The notes under the pieces: model-generated
The model's database searches: none
What the model was told of the DNA's origin: nothing
The model's input: the letters and a program-made list of their open reading frames with translations, nothing else
Translations under genes and position numbers: made by a program
From: Anthoceros angustus
Lineage: Eukaryota > Plantae > Anthocerotophyta
Assembly (NCBI GenBank): GCA_010909165.1
Contig: MU008160.1
Span: 1,674,001 to 1,738,000 of the forward strand
DNA length: 64,000 nt
Direction of reading: 5' to 3'
Shown here: positions 7,049 to 11,479 of the stretch, piece by piece
Layout: the number at the start of each line of letters is the position of its first letter
How positions within the stretch are numbered: the first letter of the stretch is position 1

Positions 7049-7107
7049 TTGCAAGCTCGTCTCTGCAAGCTTTGCAAGCTCGTCTCTGCAAGCTTTGCAA
7101 GCTCGTC
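7049..7107. repeat. Short tandem repeat (tttgcaagctcgtctctgcaagc, about 2.5 copies)
   Basis: Directly visible 23-nt duplication. Confidence 0.85.
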
Positions 7108-7326
7108 GACGTGGGCAGCTCATGCTTTCAGAAGCGTCTAGACTCGAGGTGACTGATTAATATACGGTTTGAACTGAATGCAAGATTAGATGGTACAAAC
7201 ATGATACAGAACAACGTATCATAAAAACATATGAGACTCATACATTTTTATACTACGTTGTTGCTTCACACAAAGCCTGCCAATCCACTCACTTCAGCTT
7301 GAGACGTAGCTGCAGGTGCTGACTAC

Positions 7327-10300
7327 CTAGGCGACGCCACCAGCTCGAAGTTCCATCACATCATCTGCGTTACCTGTGCCCGGGTGTTGTGCTTCCTTGC
7401 TGGTCTTTCTTTCAGGCCTTCTTCGGAACCGGGTCCACAGCAGGAGACCTACAGTTGCGGCAAGAGCCCACCATAGCTGTTCCCTTCTGTTGCTGCCACT
7501 CCTGTTGGGCTCGGTAGGCGCTTTGGTTTTAGGTTGAGACCGGGATTGGGCAGAAGCCGCTTGTTGTGTCTCACGAGGATCAAGCTCTCCCTGTACTGAT
7601 TTTCTGGCAGGGTACTGGCCGCAGGTGATACAGAACGTTTGATCTGGGGAGGAGAGCTGGTAACCGCAGGCAAAGCACGGGTCCGAACCCCACCTCGTCG
7701 TCCCTGGAGGTGGGCTATCCTTGAACACTCGCTTGAAGGTGAGATAGTAGTTGAGGTGCTCGGCGTCCCGGATCTGAACGTCGTCCAGCTTCTCGATGAG
7801 GTTCACTGCTGTTTGTAGAGAAGACGGAGTTAATCTTTTCGTATAAAAACTTGGAAGAACTGTGGTTCCACAGCCCACCTGGACAGGACGGGACAAGCAC
7901 TGCTGTCAGCAACGAAAAGTGACGTGACCGGAGTTTGAGCAACAAGAGCTTATTTGAAAGGACTAATGTGAGCAACAAGGACATGTGTGAACAACAGGAT
8001 CTGATATTAGCCATGCATACCCGTTTCTTCACACTGGATGTAAGAAAGAACATACACTCCGGGAACTCAGTTCTCTCGTCCTTGAAATTAGCCAGAGGTT
8101 TAGGGTTACGAATTTCCAACCTCTATGGGGTCCTTTCTCCTCCATGCAGAATACACTCCTGGGAATGCTTCCCTCAGAATGAGCTTCCCGTGAACGTCTG
8201 AGCCGTTCCCCGCAACCCCGATTAGGTCGGCTCTGGAGAGCTTTAATGCGTACTTGCGAACCTTGGGGTGCAAATACGGCTGACGAACCTGCATCATGCC
8301 GATCATCGAAACTTCAGAACCGATTTGGGTTCCACCAAGCCGGAGGTGGAGCATGAGAGTCATGTAACCTCAATCCCCAATGCCGCTCCCAGTGGCACAG
8401 CAGAGAACTGCATGACGTTGACGATATGCTTTCGGTAGCTGTTGAACCTCTCTTCTGGCATAGAGTGAATGAAGTTGTACCTGCACAGAACGAGAATGTC
8501 AGCCGAGGGTAAATGTTCTTGCGGCATAACATGAATCGGGGCAGAACATGGGATGACATCTCACCCCGCAAACAGCTCATCTGCACCGTCACCAGTGACA
8601 ACAGAAGTAAAGCCCCGGCGCTTTGCCTCTCGCAGTGCAGCCGCAATAGCTACAGAATTTCGTATCTGAAAGCACTCAGAAGGGCCACGTTCAGAACTGC
8701 AGCTGGATGGATGTGGAACACTGAAACCAGTGGAGGCATCTCAAGACAATGGAACCAGATGGAGAGTACTACCTCCATGGGATCGAATGTCTTCAGAGTC
8801 TTGACAACAAACTCAAGCTCCTGTTCCAGAAGAGTGACTGCACTGTCTTCCCCTGCTCCACCGATGACCACATGTTCCATCCCACACCGCTTGGCCACGG
8901 CCTGAGCGTATGGCCCATCTGTTGCTGCACTACCTGCTATTACAGTGATGCCTACCCTGAATGCCCCAGGACGAAGCAGAGACGCCCCCTCTGCTAAGAT
9001 GGACGTGTCGAGCCCTCCGCTGAGCAGTAAACAATCTGCTGGTAGCATCTTTCCAAGACTCTCTAACACAATCTTTCGAGCCACAGTTGCTTTCTTGGAC
9101 AGTGCCGCCAGTCCAACTGAGGGGACATCAGGGAGGGGCATCGGGCTCTGGCACAATCTGGCATCTTGAGGCCTGGAGACATCTACAGCAGGTTGAGGTC
9201 CACTCTTTTTCAACTCTGTACTTTTAGAAGGATCTGGCCAGATCTGCCTGCGGCTAGATGGAGTATCACCTCTCGGGTCATTATCTGACTCTGCATCTAC
9301 GAGTCTAGCTTTAGCTGCAGCCTTCTCAGTGGATGTCCACAAACTGGACAGTATATCACTTCCATCAGATAAGGACGACAGTGATTTCCTGAGAACTGGT
9401 GGAGTCGTTGCAAGAGCATTGTCCTGCTCAGAGCGTCCAGTTTCATATGCAGAGAGGATCTTCGGACTCGGTTCACCCAACACCCTCTCCCTATCTACTT
9501 CAAAATGTTTGCCACATTCCACTTCCTGTACCTGGCTGAAAGGTCCACTTCGACTCTCCACTGTAGAACCCATGTCTTCCTGAGGCATGATCTCATCAGA
9601 GGCAGTTGGCTCAACTCCTTGGTGTCCTTCACCAGCATCTTCCCTAGGGGTTCTCTCCACGACTTCAACCACATTCCTAGATCCTGGTGGAGAAGTCCAG
9701 CCTTCAAACGGATTCACAAAGTGACCATCCCTGGGAGTTTCTTGTACAACATCTCCACCCCGGCCATTGGGCCCATTGGCTACCTCCTTTCCCCGCTCAC
9801 CAAGAAAAGTGAGAGACACAAATGTGTCCCATCGCACAAACCCCTTCCCTTCATATCGGAAGGCCCCATTATCATGACCTGACCCATGCAAAATCTCAGC
9901 CATGAGTTCTGCAGAGTCCACAACACTTGCGCCAGAATTGTTGAAGTACCTGCTACAGCAAAGATTCACTTGCTCAGAATTCTTTTCAATCAAGGGCATC
10001 ATCTACACTACAACTCTACCAGTGAGTCGGTCAGTACCTAACCTGTCACCATCAGCAAGAAAGACTTTCTCTGCTTTCACTGCCCGCAGATGTCGCCACT
10101 CTATGTGACTCTCCAGCTGTGCCATTTCTTTCCCAGCCTTTTCAATGCCAAGCCCGCAGCACATCACCACCACCACGTCAGGATCACTCGCCAGCAAACT
10201 GTGCCAGGAGATCACAGGAGTAGGGCCACCGACATCACCAAACAGATTCACGCCTCCAGCACAAGTCACAATTTCCGGAACCCAGAACCCTGCTCCCATC

Positions 10301-11050
10301 AGTGGATCCAACCATTGCAGACAGGCCACCGAGACAGGAGGCACCCATTTCAAAGTCCTCAATTGAACATTCCTCCATCGTGCCTTGAGCTGCTGTACAA
10401 ACACCTCACCCCGTGTATGTGCAGCACAGGAATCGGCAATCATCTGAATGTTGTCAAACACATCCGCTATCTGCACCACCCACGAACATCAGTCTTACTT
10501 CTCAAGGAAACACAGTCTGCATTCACACCCACAAACACTCCACATATTACTCACTCGACGCGGCTTGAGGGACACCACCTTGCACACCCCACTACCGCCC
10601 AACAAAAACAGGCCACAGGCCTTCTCCAAATCATTCAGACTGACTGCACAGACACCGCATTCATCTTGGGTGATGATGACATCAGGCTGGAGCTTCCTGA
10701 GCAGCTCGGCATCCACAGTATACCGTGACAGGCCACGCTCAACCAGGTGCCGAACCTGCCAATCACCCACAAATATCATTGTAGTGCCACAACATCCAAC
10801 TCCCACAAGAAACTACATTACCAGAACCTGCTTCTCAAAGCACCTGTGCATCAATCTGGCCGCTGGCCAACTGCTCTGGGTCCTGCCCTAGCGCATGTGC
10901 CGAGACACAAGGGAGATTCAACACGGAAGGCGGCCGCTTGCATTCATGTGAACGTCCCACCAATAGATGCTGCAACCCCAGCCCATAGATAACCTCTGTC
11001 GCAGCCCCAAGCAAAGACACGACCCTTGGCCGTGGCCCTTCGATGGTCAT
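7327..11050 (-). CDS. Fusion protein: BtuF-like (cobalamin/Fe-siderophore class III) substrate-binding domain + disordered linker + asparagine-synthase-like PP-loop domain + Cys4 zinc finger + C-terminal TM anchor (about 980 aa; start could lie further upstream)
   Basis: Eight exons with consistent phases: 11050-10844, 10755-10555, 10470-10043, 9949-8773, 8665-8565, 8480-8369, 8288-8121, 7878-7327. Binding-protein motifs RVVSLLGAATE..LVGRSHEC, CLQWLDPLMGAGFWVPE, DPDVVVVMCCG, DGDRYFNNSGASVVDSAELMAEILH. Synthetase motifs LLLSGGLDTS, DPME|IRNS, TGDGADELFAG|Y, KLILREAF. Also CFACG..FCITCG and LWWALAATVGLLLW followed by basic residues. Confidence 0.85.
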
Positions 11051-11479
11051 CTCGCCTACCTCCTGCAGTTCATTCACAGCTTCCTTCCCAGCTGCAATGC
11101 AAACGGAGTTGGCTGTAGTCCGCAGTCCCAGCTGACAGTTCACAACTATCCTACAATTAGCAATAAATCTCAACAAGATAAAGGCCAGGCTTTATAGGAG
11201 GCGGCGGTCACTGTATTTTCGGAAGCGAGGTATAACCACGTGACGAGGGCAGACATTTAGGCCGGATTTCCATGCCTTGTGTAAAATATCCTGATTGAAT
11301 ACCTTGAGCAGCTCGGTATTCAAGGTCAGAAGGAATAGGTAGAAGGGAAAGCGAGACGGACACGATGCGGTGCCAACACGGGTGAACTTGTGAAGGTGAC
11401 AACGATGTGAAGCTTCATTAGCGGACAGATTACAGAGTCTACTGGAAAGAAAAAAAGAGTCGCTGGCGGAGACCGACAC

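Follow-up and report, generated by a model that had tools for sequence, protein, structure and literature searches.

What does a hornwort do with a single protein in which a binding domain of the kind that serves prokaryotic cobalamin importers is joined to an asparagine-synthetase-like enzyme deprived of its glutaminase? The question is raised by a gene lying at positions 11050-7327, on the minus strand, of a stretch of 64,000 nucleotides (nt) of the genome of Anthoceros angustus (contig MU008160.1, positions 1,674,001 to 1,738,000), hereafter called the window. The answer that we favour, and hold to be probable though well short of assured, is that the gene represents the plant form of an uncharacterised enzyme for the salvage of cobamides (the vitamin B12 family), which would amidate a carboxylate of a corrinoid. 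The link to B12 derives from gene context and is well supported; the substrate and the carboxylate acted upon are guesses from that context.

One transcript and one fused protein

The coding sequence, joined from the window sequence, runs over eight splice-confirmed exons (11050-10844, 10755-10555, 10470-10043, 9949-8773, 8665-8565, 8480-8369, 8288-8121 and 7878-7327, the last ending in the stop codon), which add up to 2946 nt with the stop included and encode 981 amino acids (aa). The seven introns, 80-242 nt in length, all have GT-AG borders, and the ATG at 11050 is the first in frame downstream of a 5' stop. A single contig of 3167 nt from a sequencing run of the source organism (X1) matches this model with 0 mismatches, is devoid of all seven introns with junctions exactly as modelled, and extends from 7275 to beyond 11200, so that the whole coding region lies inside it. 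Identical junctions are found, all seven on one contig, in a related organism (run X2, approximately 95% identity) and, split over two contigs, in a second related organism (run X14, in which the joint 7876/8119 has 26 letters on its shorter side), whereas run X22 contains the unspliced, intron-containing DNA form of the gene. Because introns are lost exactly in three organisms beside this DNA contig, we read the contigs of X1, X2 and X14 as spliced mRNA, the RNA nature of these runs being otherwise a guess. The gene is therefore real and expressed, and its single transcript encodes a single protein in which the motifs are intact. The single eight-exon frame proposed in a preliminary description of this locus, made from the DNA letters alone, is thus upheld, as is its continuity across the junctions 10043/9949 and 8773/8665, both of which lie on single intron-free contigs (X1 and X2).

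From its N-terminus, the protein contains a Peripla_BP_2 domain without signal peptide, an acidic linker, a glutaminase-less AsnB-type PP-loop (ATP pyrophosphatase) domain, a four-Cys zinc ribbon and a C-terminal hydrophobic segment. The first of these, a cytosolic class III binding-protein-like domain (aa 7-319; 9829-11032, covering exons 1-3 and running into exon 4), is recognised by Pfam in exon 3 alone with 41.8 bits against a cut-off of 27.5, full-length orthologues scoring 42-93 bits. It possesses 23 of the 24 binding-domain residues conserved in its subfamily, and three of its motifs deserve attention: GRSHEC (aa 32-37; 10940-10957), a motif of the cytosolic subfamily whose His and Cys are almost invariant among 65 sequences; QDECGVCAV (aa 99-107; 10642-10668), with the CxxC pair that alignments show to be typical of the same subfamily; and CLQWLDPLMGAGFWVPE (aa 186-202; 10273-10323), in which W189, P192, W199 and P201 are invariant or almost so within the subfamily. 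No signal peptide is present in the window protein, as previously surmised, and there is no space for one because the first β-strand of the binding domain already begins at residue 9. The linker that follows (aa 320-554, 235 aa; 9124-9828) is poorly conserved and, as the preliminary description had stated, long and acidic, with an isoelectric point of 4.7, 40 Asp and Glu versus 26 Lys and Arg, and 84 of its 235 residues being Ser, Thr, Pro or Gly. It cannot be aligned between homologues and shortens to approximately 30 aa in Prasinoderma.

The enzyme domain (aa 555-860; 7693-9123, in exons 4-8) belongs to the Asn_synthase family of Pfam, the match being located in exons 4-5, and NCBIfam models agree on the domains. 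All 40 residues conserved in the AsnB-like family are present in the window protein, among them the Asp of the PP-loop and the zinc ribbon's four Cys; the two motifs named in the preliminary description, namely the PP-loop SGGLDTS (aa 589-595; 9001-9021), with Asp593 intact, and TGDGADELFAG (aa 695-705), are both in place. Within the family, the PP-loop Asp is retained in 56 of 61 members and lost in the fusion proteins of Zygnematophyceae, of a lycophyte and of ferns, the latter being also without the CxxC pair. The reported lack of an N-terminal nucleophile (Ntn) glutaminase is also correct: Pfam and NCBIfam scans of the exons find no GATase match in the window protein, and the profile of the AsnB-like family covers only residues 209-522 of E. 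coli AsnB (E=2.9e-20). Neither the CbiA ATPase domain nor the GATase_3 domain is found in the protein with Pfam. The zinc ribbon, earlier noticed as a CxxC..CxxC finger, is formed by C866, C869, C881 and C884 (7618-7677); its four Cys recur in 58-59 of the 61 family members, those of archaea among them, and it is weakly matched by the DZR/Zn-ribbon models of Pfam. Finally, a hydrophobic segment identified by hydropathy (aa 933-947; 7432-7476), followed by a basic stretch and 34 residues to the end, is a putative membrane anchor of borderline hydropathy. Clearer hydrophobic tails terminate a lycophyte homologue (P0151) and two proteins from transcriptomes (P0008 and P0014).

Gene context in prokaryotes

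The preliminary description raised the question of whether prokaryotic homologues of the two halves are adjacent in operons. All four AsnB-like orthologues of Thermoplasmata type that we looked up adjoin a Peripla_BP_2 gene, and these neighbours belong to the same signal-less subfamily with Cys motifs as the plant domain; what the plant has fused thus stands in these archaea as an adjacent pair in an operon. In one such locus (L012), the gene order is beta-propeller, DUF4430, DUF6580, AsnB-like, CobB and binding protein, with the CobB reaching 465 bits versus a cut-off of 254 for cobyrinate a,c-diamide synthase in NCBIfam while staying below the cut-off for CfbB of coenzyme F430 synthesis.

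We then scanned 70 prokaryotic loci, taking one genome per species, clustering the neighbouring proteins and naming their representatives with Pfam. The loci come from archaea of the Thermoplasmata, Bathyarchaeia, Nitrososphaeria, Methanomethylicia, Korarchaeia, Desulfurococcales and Thermoproteales, together with a few bacteria (Acidobacteria, Dehalococcoidia, Planctomycetota and one actinobacterium). The most frequent neighbours are genes for binding proteins and for DUF71 (Diphthami_syn_2), each in 23 of the 70 loci, and for FecCD (BtuC-type) permeases, in 22; then follow CobS and CbiZ (11 loci each), CbiB (nine loci), and CobU, CobB, B12-binding radical SAM and NAD-synthase-like proteins (six loci each). 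At least one neighbour of cobamide type is present in 42 of the 70 loci, and full cobamide operons are found in L035, L044, L047, L050, L053 and L054. An operon of Dehalococcoidales, for instance, has the order BtuF-BtuC-BtuD-CbiB-CobD-AsnB-like-CobT-CobS-CobC-DUF71-CobU, and an operon of Acidobacteria comprises a riboswitch, a TonB-dependent receptor, CobT, CobS, a cytosolic binding protein, a tetrapyrrole methylase, DUF6580, the AsnB-like enzyme and a nitroreductase. The cobalamin riboswitch RF00174 of Rfam lies upstream of three bacterial operons, one of Acidobacteria and two of Dehalococcoidales (L035, with 97.7 bits, L050 and L054), as well as upstream of an operon containing a receptor, an adenosyltransferase and a fusion of DUF71 with a binding protein. 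No riboswitch was detected at L052 and L065; the sequence scanned for L046 begins within the operon and that for L053 has little upstream sequence. A distant archaeal AsnB-like protein (P0265, loci L006-L009) is surrounded by housekeeping genes.

Among these partners is DUF71. From clustering of a similar kind, de Crecy-Lagard et al. predicted in 2012 that its DUF71-B12 group has a part in B12 salvage, in a study in which the AsnB-like family was not described (PMC3541065). Both are PP-loop proteins of carboxylate amidase type residing in the same operons, DUF71 being a direct neighbour of the AsnB-like gene in approximately 16 loci, and their association extends to gene fusion: in Bryopsis, DUF71 and the AsnB-like enzyme form one protein, and in metagenomic bacteria DUF71 is joined to the same subfamily of binding proteins. 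They nevertheless belong to different PP-loop families with homology limited to the HUP fold, and the function of DUF71-B12 is likewise predicted. A third PP-loop gene, NAD-synthase-like, lies one or two genes from the AsnB-like gene in six loci of Bathyarchaeia type (L032, L034, L036, L037, L043 and L064), usually with DUF71 on its other side, so that these loci would bring together up to three different carboxylate-amidating PP-loop enzymes. A further fusion, in a metagenomic protein of 510 aa (P0126), connects the cytosolic binding domain to a homocysteine S-methyltransferase domain, which is the first module of MetH; a corrinoid-dependent methyltransferase of split or alternative design may be behind it.

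Two additional families recur in these surroundings. The membrane protein DUF6580 recurs beside the AsnB-like enzyme, and the N-terminal part of a TonB-dependent receptor, with a cobalamin riboswitch upstream of it, is matched by this family too (L005, 7369-7992; L012, 1483-2106; L035, 7472-8008; L084, 209-2527); DUF6580 may well be a further uncharacterised family linked to B12. DUF4430, which we take to be a transcobalamin-like domain, stands beside the AsnB-like enzyme in two archaeal loci. In the korarchaeal locus of Methanodesulfokora (L047, 12193-16256), the cobamide genes run on into Mur-ligase-like, nitrogenase-like and CobB/CfbB-like genes that resemble those for the synthesis of coenzyme F430.

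Relatives of the two halves and spread of the fusion

The closest relatives of the binding half are bacterial proteins of approximately 300 aa that start straight at the first β-strand without signal peptide and share the motifs H-E-C, CxVC, W-x-PE, PCG and YFNRPGPR of the cytosolic subfamily. Their source annotations, either 'cobalamin-binding protein' or 'iron complex transport system substrate-binding protein', are taken here as generic names at the level of the family. A look-up of the stand-alone bacterial binding proteins added their phyla and confirmed both families. By sequence, the nearest solved structure is that of BtuF (5ysc, E=1.6e-7), with none for close members of the subfamily. 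The AlphaFold model of the domain in the Closterium orthologue, which is about 50% identical to the window protein, has a mean predicted local distance difference test (pLDDT) of 91.7 and displays the class III two-lobe fold with its rigid long helix at residues 151-170. At least 175 structures in the PDB match this model at E<=0.001, and the 50 among the matches listed are all class III binders; the best are the haem binders ShuT, RhuT and BhuT, along with BtuF, all of them proteins that bind ligands of tetrapyrrole size. The window domain thus resembles BtuF and the haem-binding class III proteins in Pfam family, two-lobe fold and structural matches, but it differs from them in having neither signal peptide nor lipobox, which is at odds with a receptor role in an ABC (ATP-binding cassette) importer, and in belonging to a separate cytosolic subfamily of about 300 aa. 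Considering the operons, the riboswitches and the fusion with a MetH domain, we predict that it holds a corrinoid. CBA1 is similar in being a eukaryotic protein of BtuF-like fold tied to B12 use, but it is secreted or targeted to endomembranes, has little sequence similarity to BtuF and carries no enzyme domain (PMC10828217); by comparison with that description, the window domain stands apart as a clear member of Peripla_BP_2 that is cytosolic and fused to an enzyme. At L001 (6435-8921), a binding protein of the cytosolic subfamily is encoded directly downstream of a 499-aa ATP-grasp enzyme (CPSase_L-type), another type of carboxylate-amine ligase.

The enzyme half has stand-alone orthologues of 330-400 aa, retrieved at around E=1e-100 in profile searches, in Mortierellomycota, chytrids and Allomyces, in green, red and cryptophyte algae and in Thermoplasmata archaea, whereas canonical AsnB proteins bearing the glutaminase score no better than E=1e-9. 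The zinc ribbon and the motifs of the family are already present in the archaeal orthologues. In the maximum-likelihood tree, streptophyte fusions are monophyletic (100/99), with the window protein grouping with Chara and outside the lycophyte and fern copies; the fungi form one clade, the algae, including the Prasinoderma fusion, form another, and the prokaryotic sequences remain separate. Since eukaryotic and prokaryotic sequences thus fall in separate clades, the AsnB-like half is, on the evidence of this tree, an old eukaryotic family and not a recent import from prokaryotes, which corrects the prokaryotic origin envisaged in the preliminary description. Its eukaryotic spread over non-Dikarya fungi and algae fits that of B12 users; all non-Dikarya fungal lineages use cobalamin (PMC8085122). 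In the fungal loci L085 and L086 there is no clustering around the AsnB-like gene, as expected of eukaryotes.

Structurally, the model of the enzyme domain of an orthologue (pLDDT 96.6) has ASNS/AsnB as its nearest neighbours in the PDB, followed by beta-lactam and carbapenam synthetases. With these enzymes the family shares the PP-loop, the synthetase fold and the acid motif GDGxDE, and their common chemistry is predicted to be adenylation of a carboxylate followed by amide formation. The differences are equally distinct: compared with AsnB relatives in which the glutaminase is inactive, the Ntn domain is wholly missing here; the proteins are short (about 330 aa), with their own C-terminal four-Cys ribbon and the motifs TFDPME and WRRKDPIEVG; and their context is cobamide salvage, not the synthesis of amino acids or antibiotics.

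How far the complete fusion extends was evaluated with exon 3 as the query of an exhaustive protein search, which yielded 890 relatives at E<=1e-10. The best long matches all combine Peripla_BP_2 with Asn_synthase and include Diphasiastrum (a lycophyte), Adiantum (a fern), Chara, Closterium and Prasinoderma, every copy being annotated as hypothetical; altogether, eight clusters from five named taxa of the green lineage encode the same fusion. Once aligned, these proteins have in common the motifs of the binding domain, a linker of variable sequence, the PP-loop domain and the zinc ribbon, and several also end in a hydrophobic tail. The fusion is conserved in the green lineage and not unique to the source organism, and this span, from Prasinoderma through Chara and Closterium to a lycophyte and ferns, removes the special tie to a plant lineage with bacterial symbionts that had been suggested. 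No moss, liverwort or seed-plant protein occurs among the strong matches of exon 3, which is suggestive of absence, not proof of it, and a tblastn search of exon 4 against plasmids gave no match. In the literature we found no description of the fusion, nor of an AsnB-like enzyme in corrinoid salvage. The earlier proposal of an undescribed system consequently remains unrefuted, because the fusion has turned out to be widespread but uncharacterised. (The Prasinoderma protein P0015, of 973 aa, has two binding-protein domains in tandem ahead of the enzyme domain, followed by the linker of about 30 aa, and would suit structural work.)

Proposed reaction, its alternatives and its meaning

If the window gene does encode a salvage enzyme for cobamides, its action would proceed as follows. 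The N-terminal BtuF-like domain would stay in the cytosol, for it has no signal peptide, and hold the corrinoid, while the PP-loop domain would adenylate a carboxylate of this ligand at the expense of ATP. Free ammonia would then be the attacking nucleophile, given that there is no glutaminase domain, an amine being less likely. The product would be an amide that is either made or restored, most likely the re-amidated side-chain carboxylate of a salvaged corrinoid that is incomplete or deamidated; we favour the side chains because the tightest partners of the enzyme, CobB, DUF71 and the NAD-synthase-like protein of Bathyarchaeia, are all carboxylate amidases. The zinc ribbon would be a structural part of the enzyme, and the hydrophobic tail would anchor the protein on the cytosolic side of an endomembrane, at the place of exit of imported B12. 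Such a reaction would resemble that of CobB/CbiA and CobQ/CbiP, which also amidate corrin carboxylates at the expense of ATP, and CobB is encoded beside the AsnB-like gene in six loci; these enzymes, though, are MinD-type ATPases with a triad glutaminase that proceed via acyl-phosphates, in contrast to the adenylating PP-loop and missing glutaminase of the present family. Eukaryotes that depend on environmental B12 would benefit from corrinoid repair of this kind. Hornworts are the only land plants with METH, MTRR and CblC/D, and they retain METH, MTRR, CblB/C/D/J and CBA1 (PMC11439496). The host appears to be such a B12-using plant. The enzyme that the preliminary description envisaged, one that binds a corrinoid and amidates or ligates it, is accordingly in strong accord with gene context, orthologues of both halves being neighbours in cobamide-salvage operons of which three have a riboswitch; the exact reaction is what we infer from that context.

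Several observations weigh against this interpretation. No cobamide gene is found near the AsnB-like gene in 28 of the 70 loci, and the operons of Dehalococcoidales and Korarchaeia pair the enzyme with ordinary secreted binding proteins instead of the cytosolic subfamily. Conversely, the stand-alone bacterial binding protein P0026 (L001-L004) has neither AsnB-like gene, cobamide gene nor riboswitch nearby, and an unrelated ABC transporter adjoins it. The AsnB-like enzyme co-occurs with CbiB and CbiZ, as a role in the nucleotide loop would also allow. Among plants, lycophyte and fern fusions persist though METH is found in no land plant except hornworts, and these are copies that have lost the PP-loop Asp. 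The structure predictions were made on orthologues and not on the window protein. As to the transmembrane segment with basic tail of the preliminary description, the hydrophobic run and the basic stretch are present, but the run has 15 residues with a best Kyte-Doolittle mean of 1.32 over 17 residues, which puts it at the limit of what would make a membrane helix, with 34 further residues behind it.

The main rival keeps the corrinoid pathway and shifts the step to the nucleotide loop. The enzyme might, beside CbiB or in its place, activate cobyric acid at the f-propionate so that aminopropanol (or its phosphate) can be ligated to it, or else it might take part in the removal and exchange of the lower ligand during the remodelling of pseudocobalamin, as proposed for DUF71-B12. 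Hornworts are hosts to cyanobacteria that make pseudocobalamin, and the algal remodelling of this compound uses COBT, COBS and COBC, with CbiZ not found in Chlamydomonas. The position of the AsnB-like gene between CbiB/CobD and CobT/CobS in operons of Dehalococcoidales and Planctomycetota, and its adjacency in several archaea to CbiZ, CbiB and CobS, would suit such a role, as would the anticorrelation of bacterial CbiZ with DUF71-B12 (PMC3541065). Yet the presence of CbiB in nine of the loci indicates that the AsnB-like enzyme is no simple replacement for it, the tightest association with other carboxylate amidases (CobB, DUF71 and, in the six Bathyarchaeia-type loci, the NAD-synthase-like protein) points to side-chain amides, and PP-loop chemistry is directed to the formation of amides, not to their cleavage. 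We therefore consider a nucleotide-loop role unlikely, albeit deserving of attention.

That the ligand is a metal chelate or tetrapyrrole other than a corrinoid (haem, sirohaem, a precursor of F430 type or a siderophore, for example) appears improbable. Haem binders come slightly ahead of BtuF among the structural matches of the binding domain, which also weakly matches NCBIfam models of siderophore binders, IsdE and F420-0; direct binding of a metal by the conserved His and Cys is conceivable, and one korarchaeal locus includes genes of F430 type with Mur-ligase-like and nitrogenase-like companions. Against this stand the specificity of the riboswitches for cobalamin, the recurrence of CobS, CobT, CobU, CbiZ, CbiB and CobB instead of haem or siderophore genes, the scores that assign the CobB of L012 to cobyrinate a,c-diamide synthases and not to CfbB, and the fusion with a MetH domain, which indicates a corrinoid. 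The siderophore or metal chelate that the preliminary description admitted beside B12 finds no support in these data.

Scarcely any more plausible is a protein without catalysis, namely a B12 sensor, chaperone or storage protein in which the AsnB-like fold acts as nucleotide binder or scaffold. The persistence of the gene in Zygnematophyceae, the lycophyte and the ferns despite loss of the PP-loop Asp (and, in ferns, of the CxxC pair) would be accounted for in this way, and a long disordered linker with a membrane tail suits a scaffold, but all conserved residues of catalytic type are intact in the window gene and its prokaryotic orthologues are compact enzymes of operons. Least credible is that two genes have been wrongly joined across a 235-aa unconserved linker inside one long exon, both halves standing alone elsewhere, or that a plain ammonia-dependent asparagine synthetase sits beside an unrelated binding protein, since the first is ruled out by intron-free contigs that, in the source organism as in one relative, each cover the coding region entirely, and countered by the same fusion in eight clusters from five named green-lineage taxa, and the second is countered by the distance of canonical AsnB (about E=1e-9 versus 1e-100 for orthologues) and the family's own zinc ribbon.

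The DNA flanking the coding region has a few features of its own. An upstream open reading frame of five codons (ATG AAC TGC AGG AGG TAG; 11056-11073, minus strand) ends 5 nt before the main ATG, in the 5' untranslated region (UTR) of the transcript contig. Approximately 200 nt past the stop codon, at about 7055-7125, a unit of 24 nt is repeated three times head-to-tail, outside the X1 contig, which ends at 7275. The X14 contig skips 72 nt directly after the stop (7254-7327); the ends of the skipped segment are AC..AC and not those of a GT-AG intron, and it is probably an indel of the 3' UTR between species.

The prevailing view is that eukaryotes do no more than import and traffic B12, their known modification of corrinoids being limited to the exchange of the lower ligand by COBT, COBS and COBC in some algae. 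Returning to the amidation of a corrinoid carboxylate, the reading that we prefer, the family emerges as a new variant among the AsnB-type amide synthetases, uncharacterised and coupled to a cytosolic carrier of BtuF type. It is conceivable, and we propose it tentatively, that the AsnB-like PP-loop enzyme, DUF71-B12, the cytosolic BtuF-like carrier and often CobB constitute an ancient, unrecognised system for the amidation or repair of cobamide side chains, common to archaea, some bacteria and B12-using eukaryotes. If this were true, a land plant, early fungi and algae would go beyond the import of B12 and finish or mend incomplete or deamidated corrinoids enzymatically. The family supplies DUF71-B12, the role of which has been open since 2012, with a candidate partner and a substrate carrier, and its pairwise fusions and riboswitch-controlled operons offer archaeal and bacterial proteins that are ready for biochemistry. 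For a step that is missing from B12 salvage or repair, it is thus a strong and concrete candidate, open to testing, and one that reaches into a land plant.

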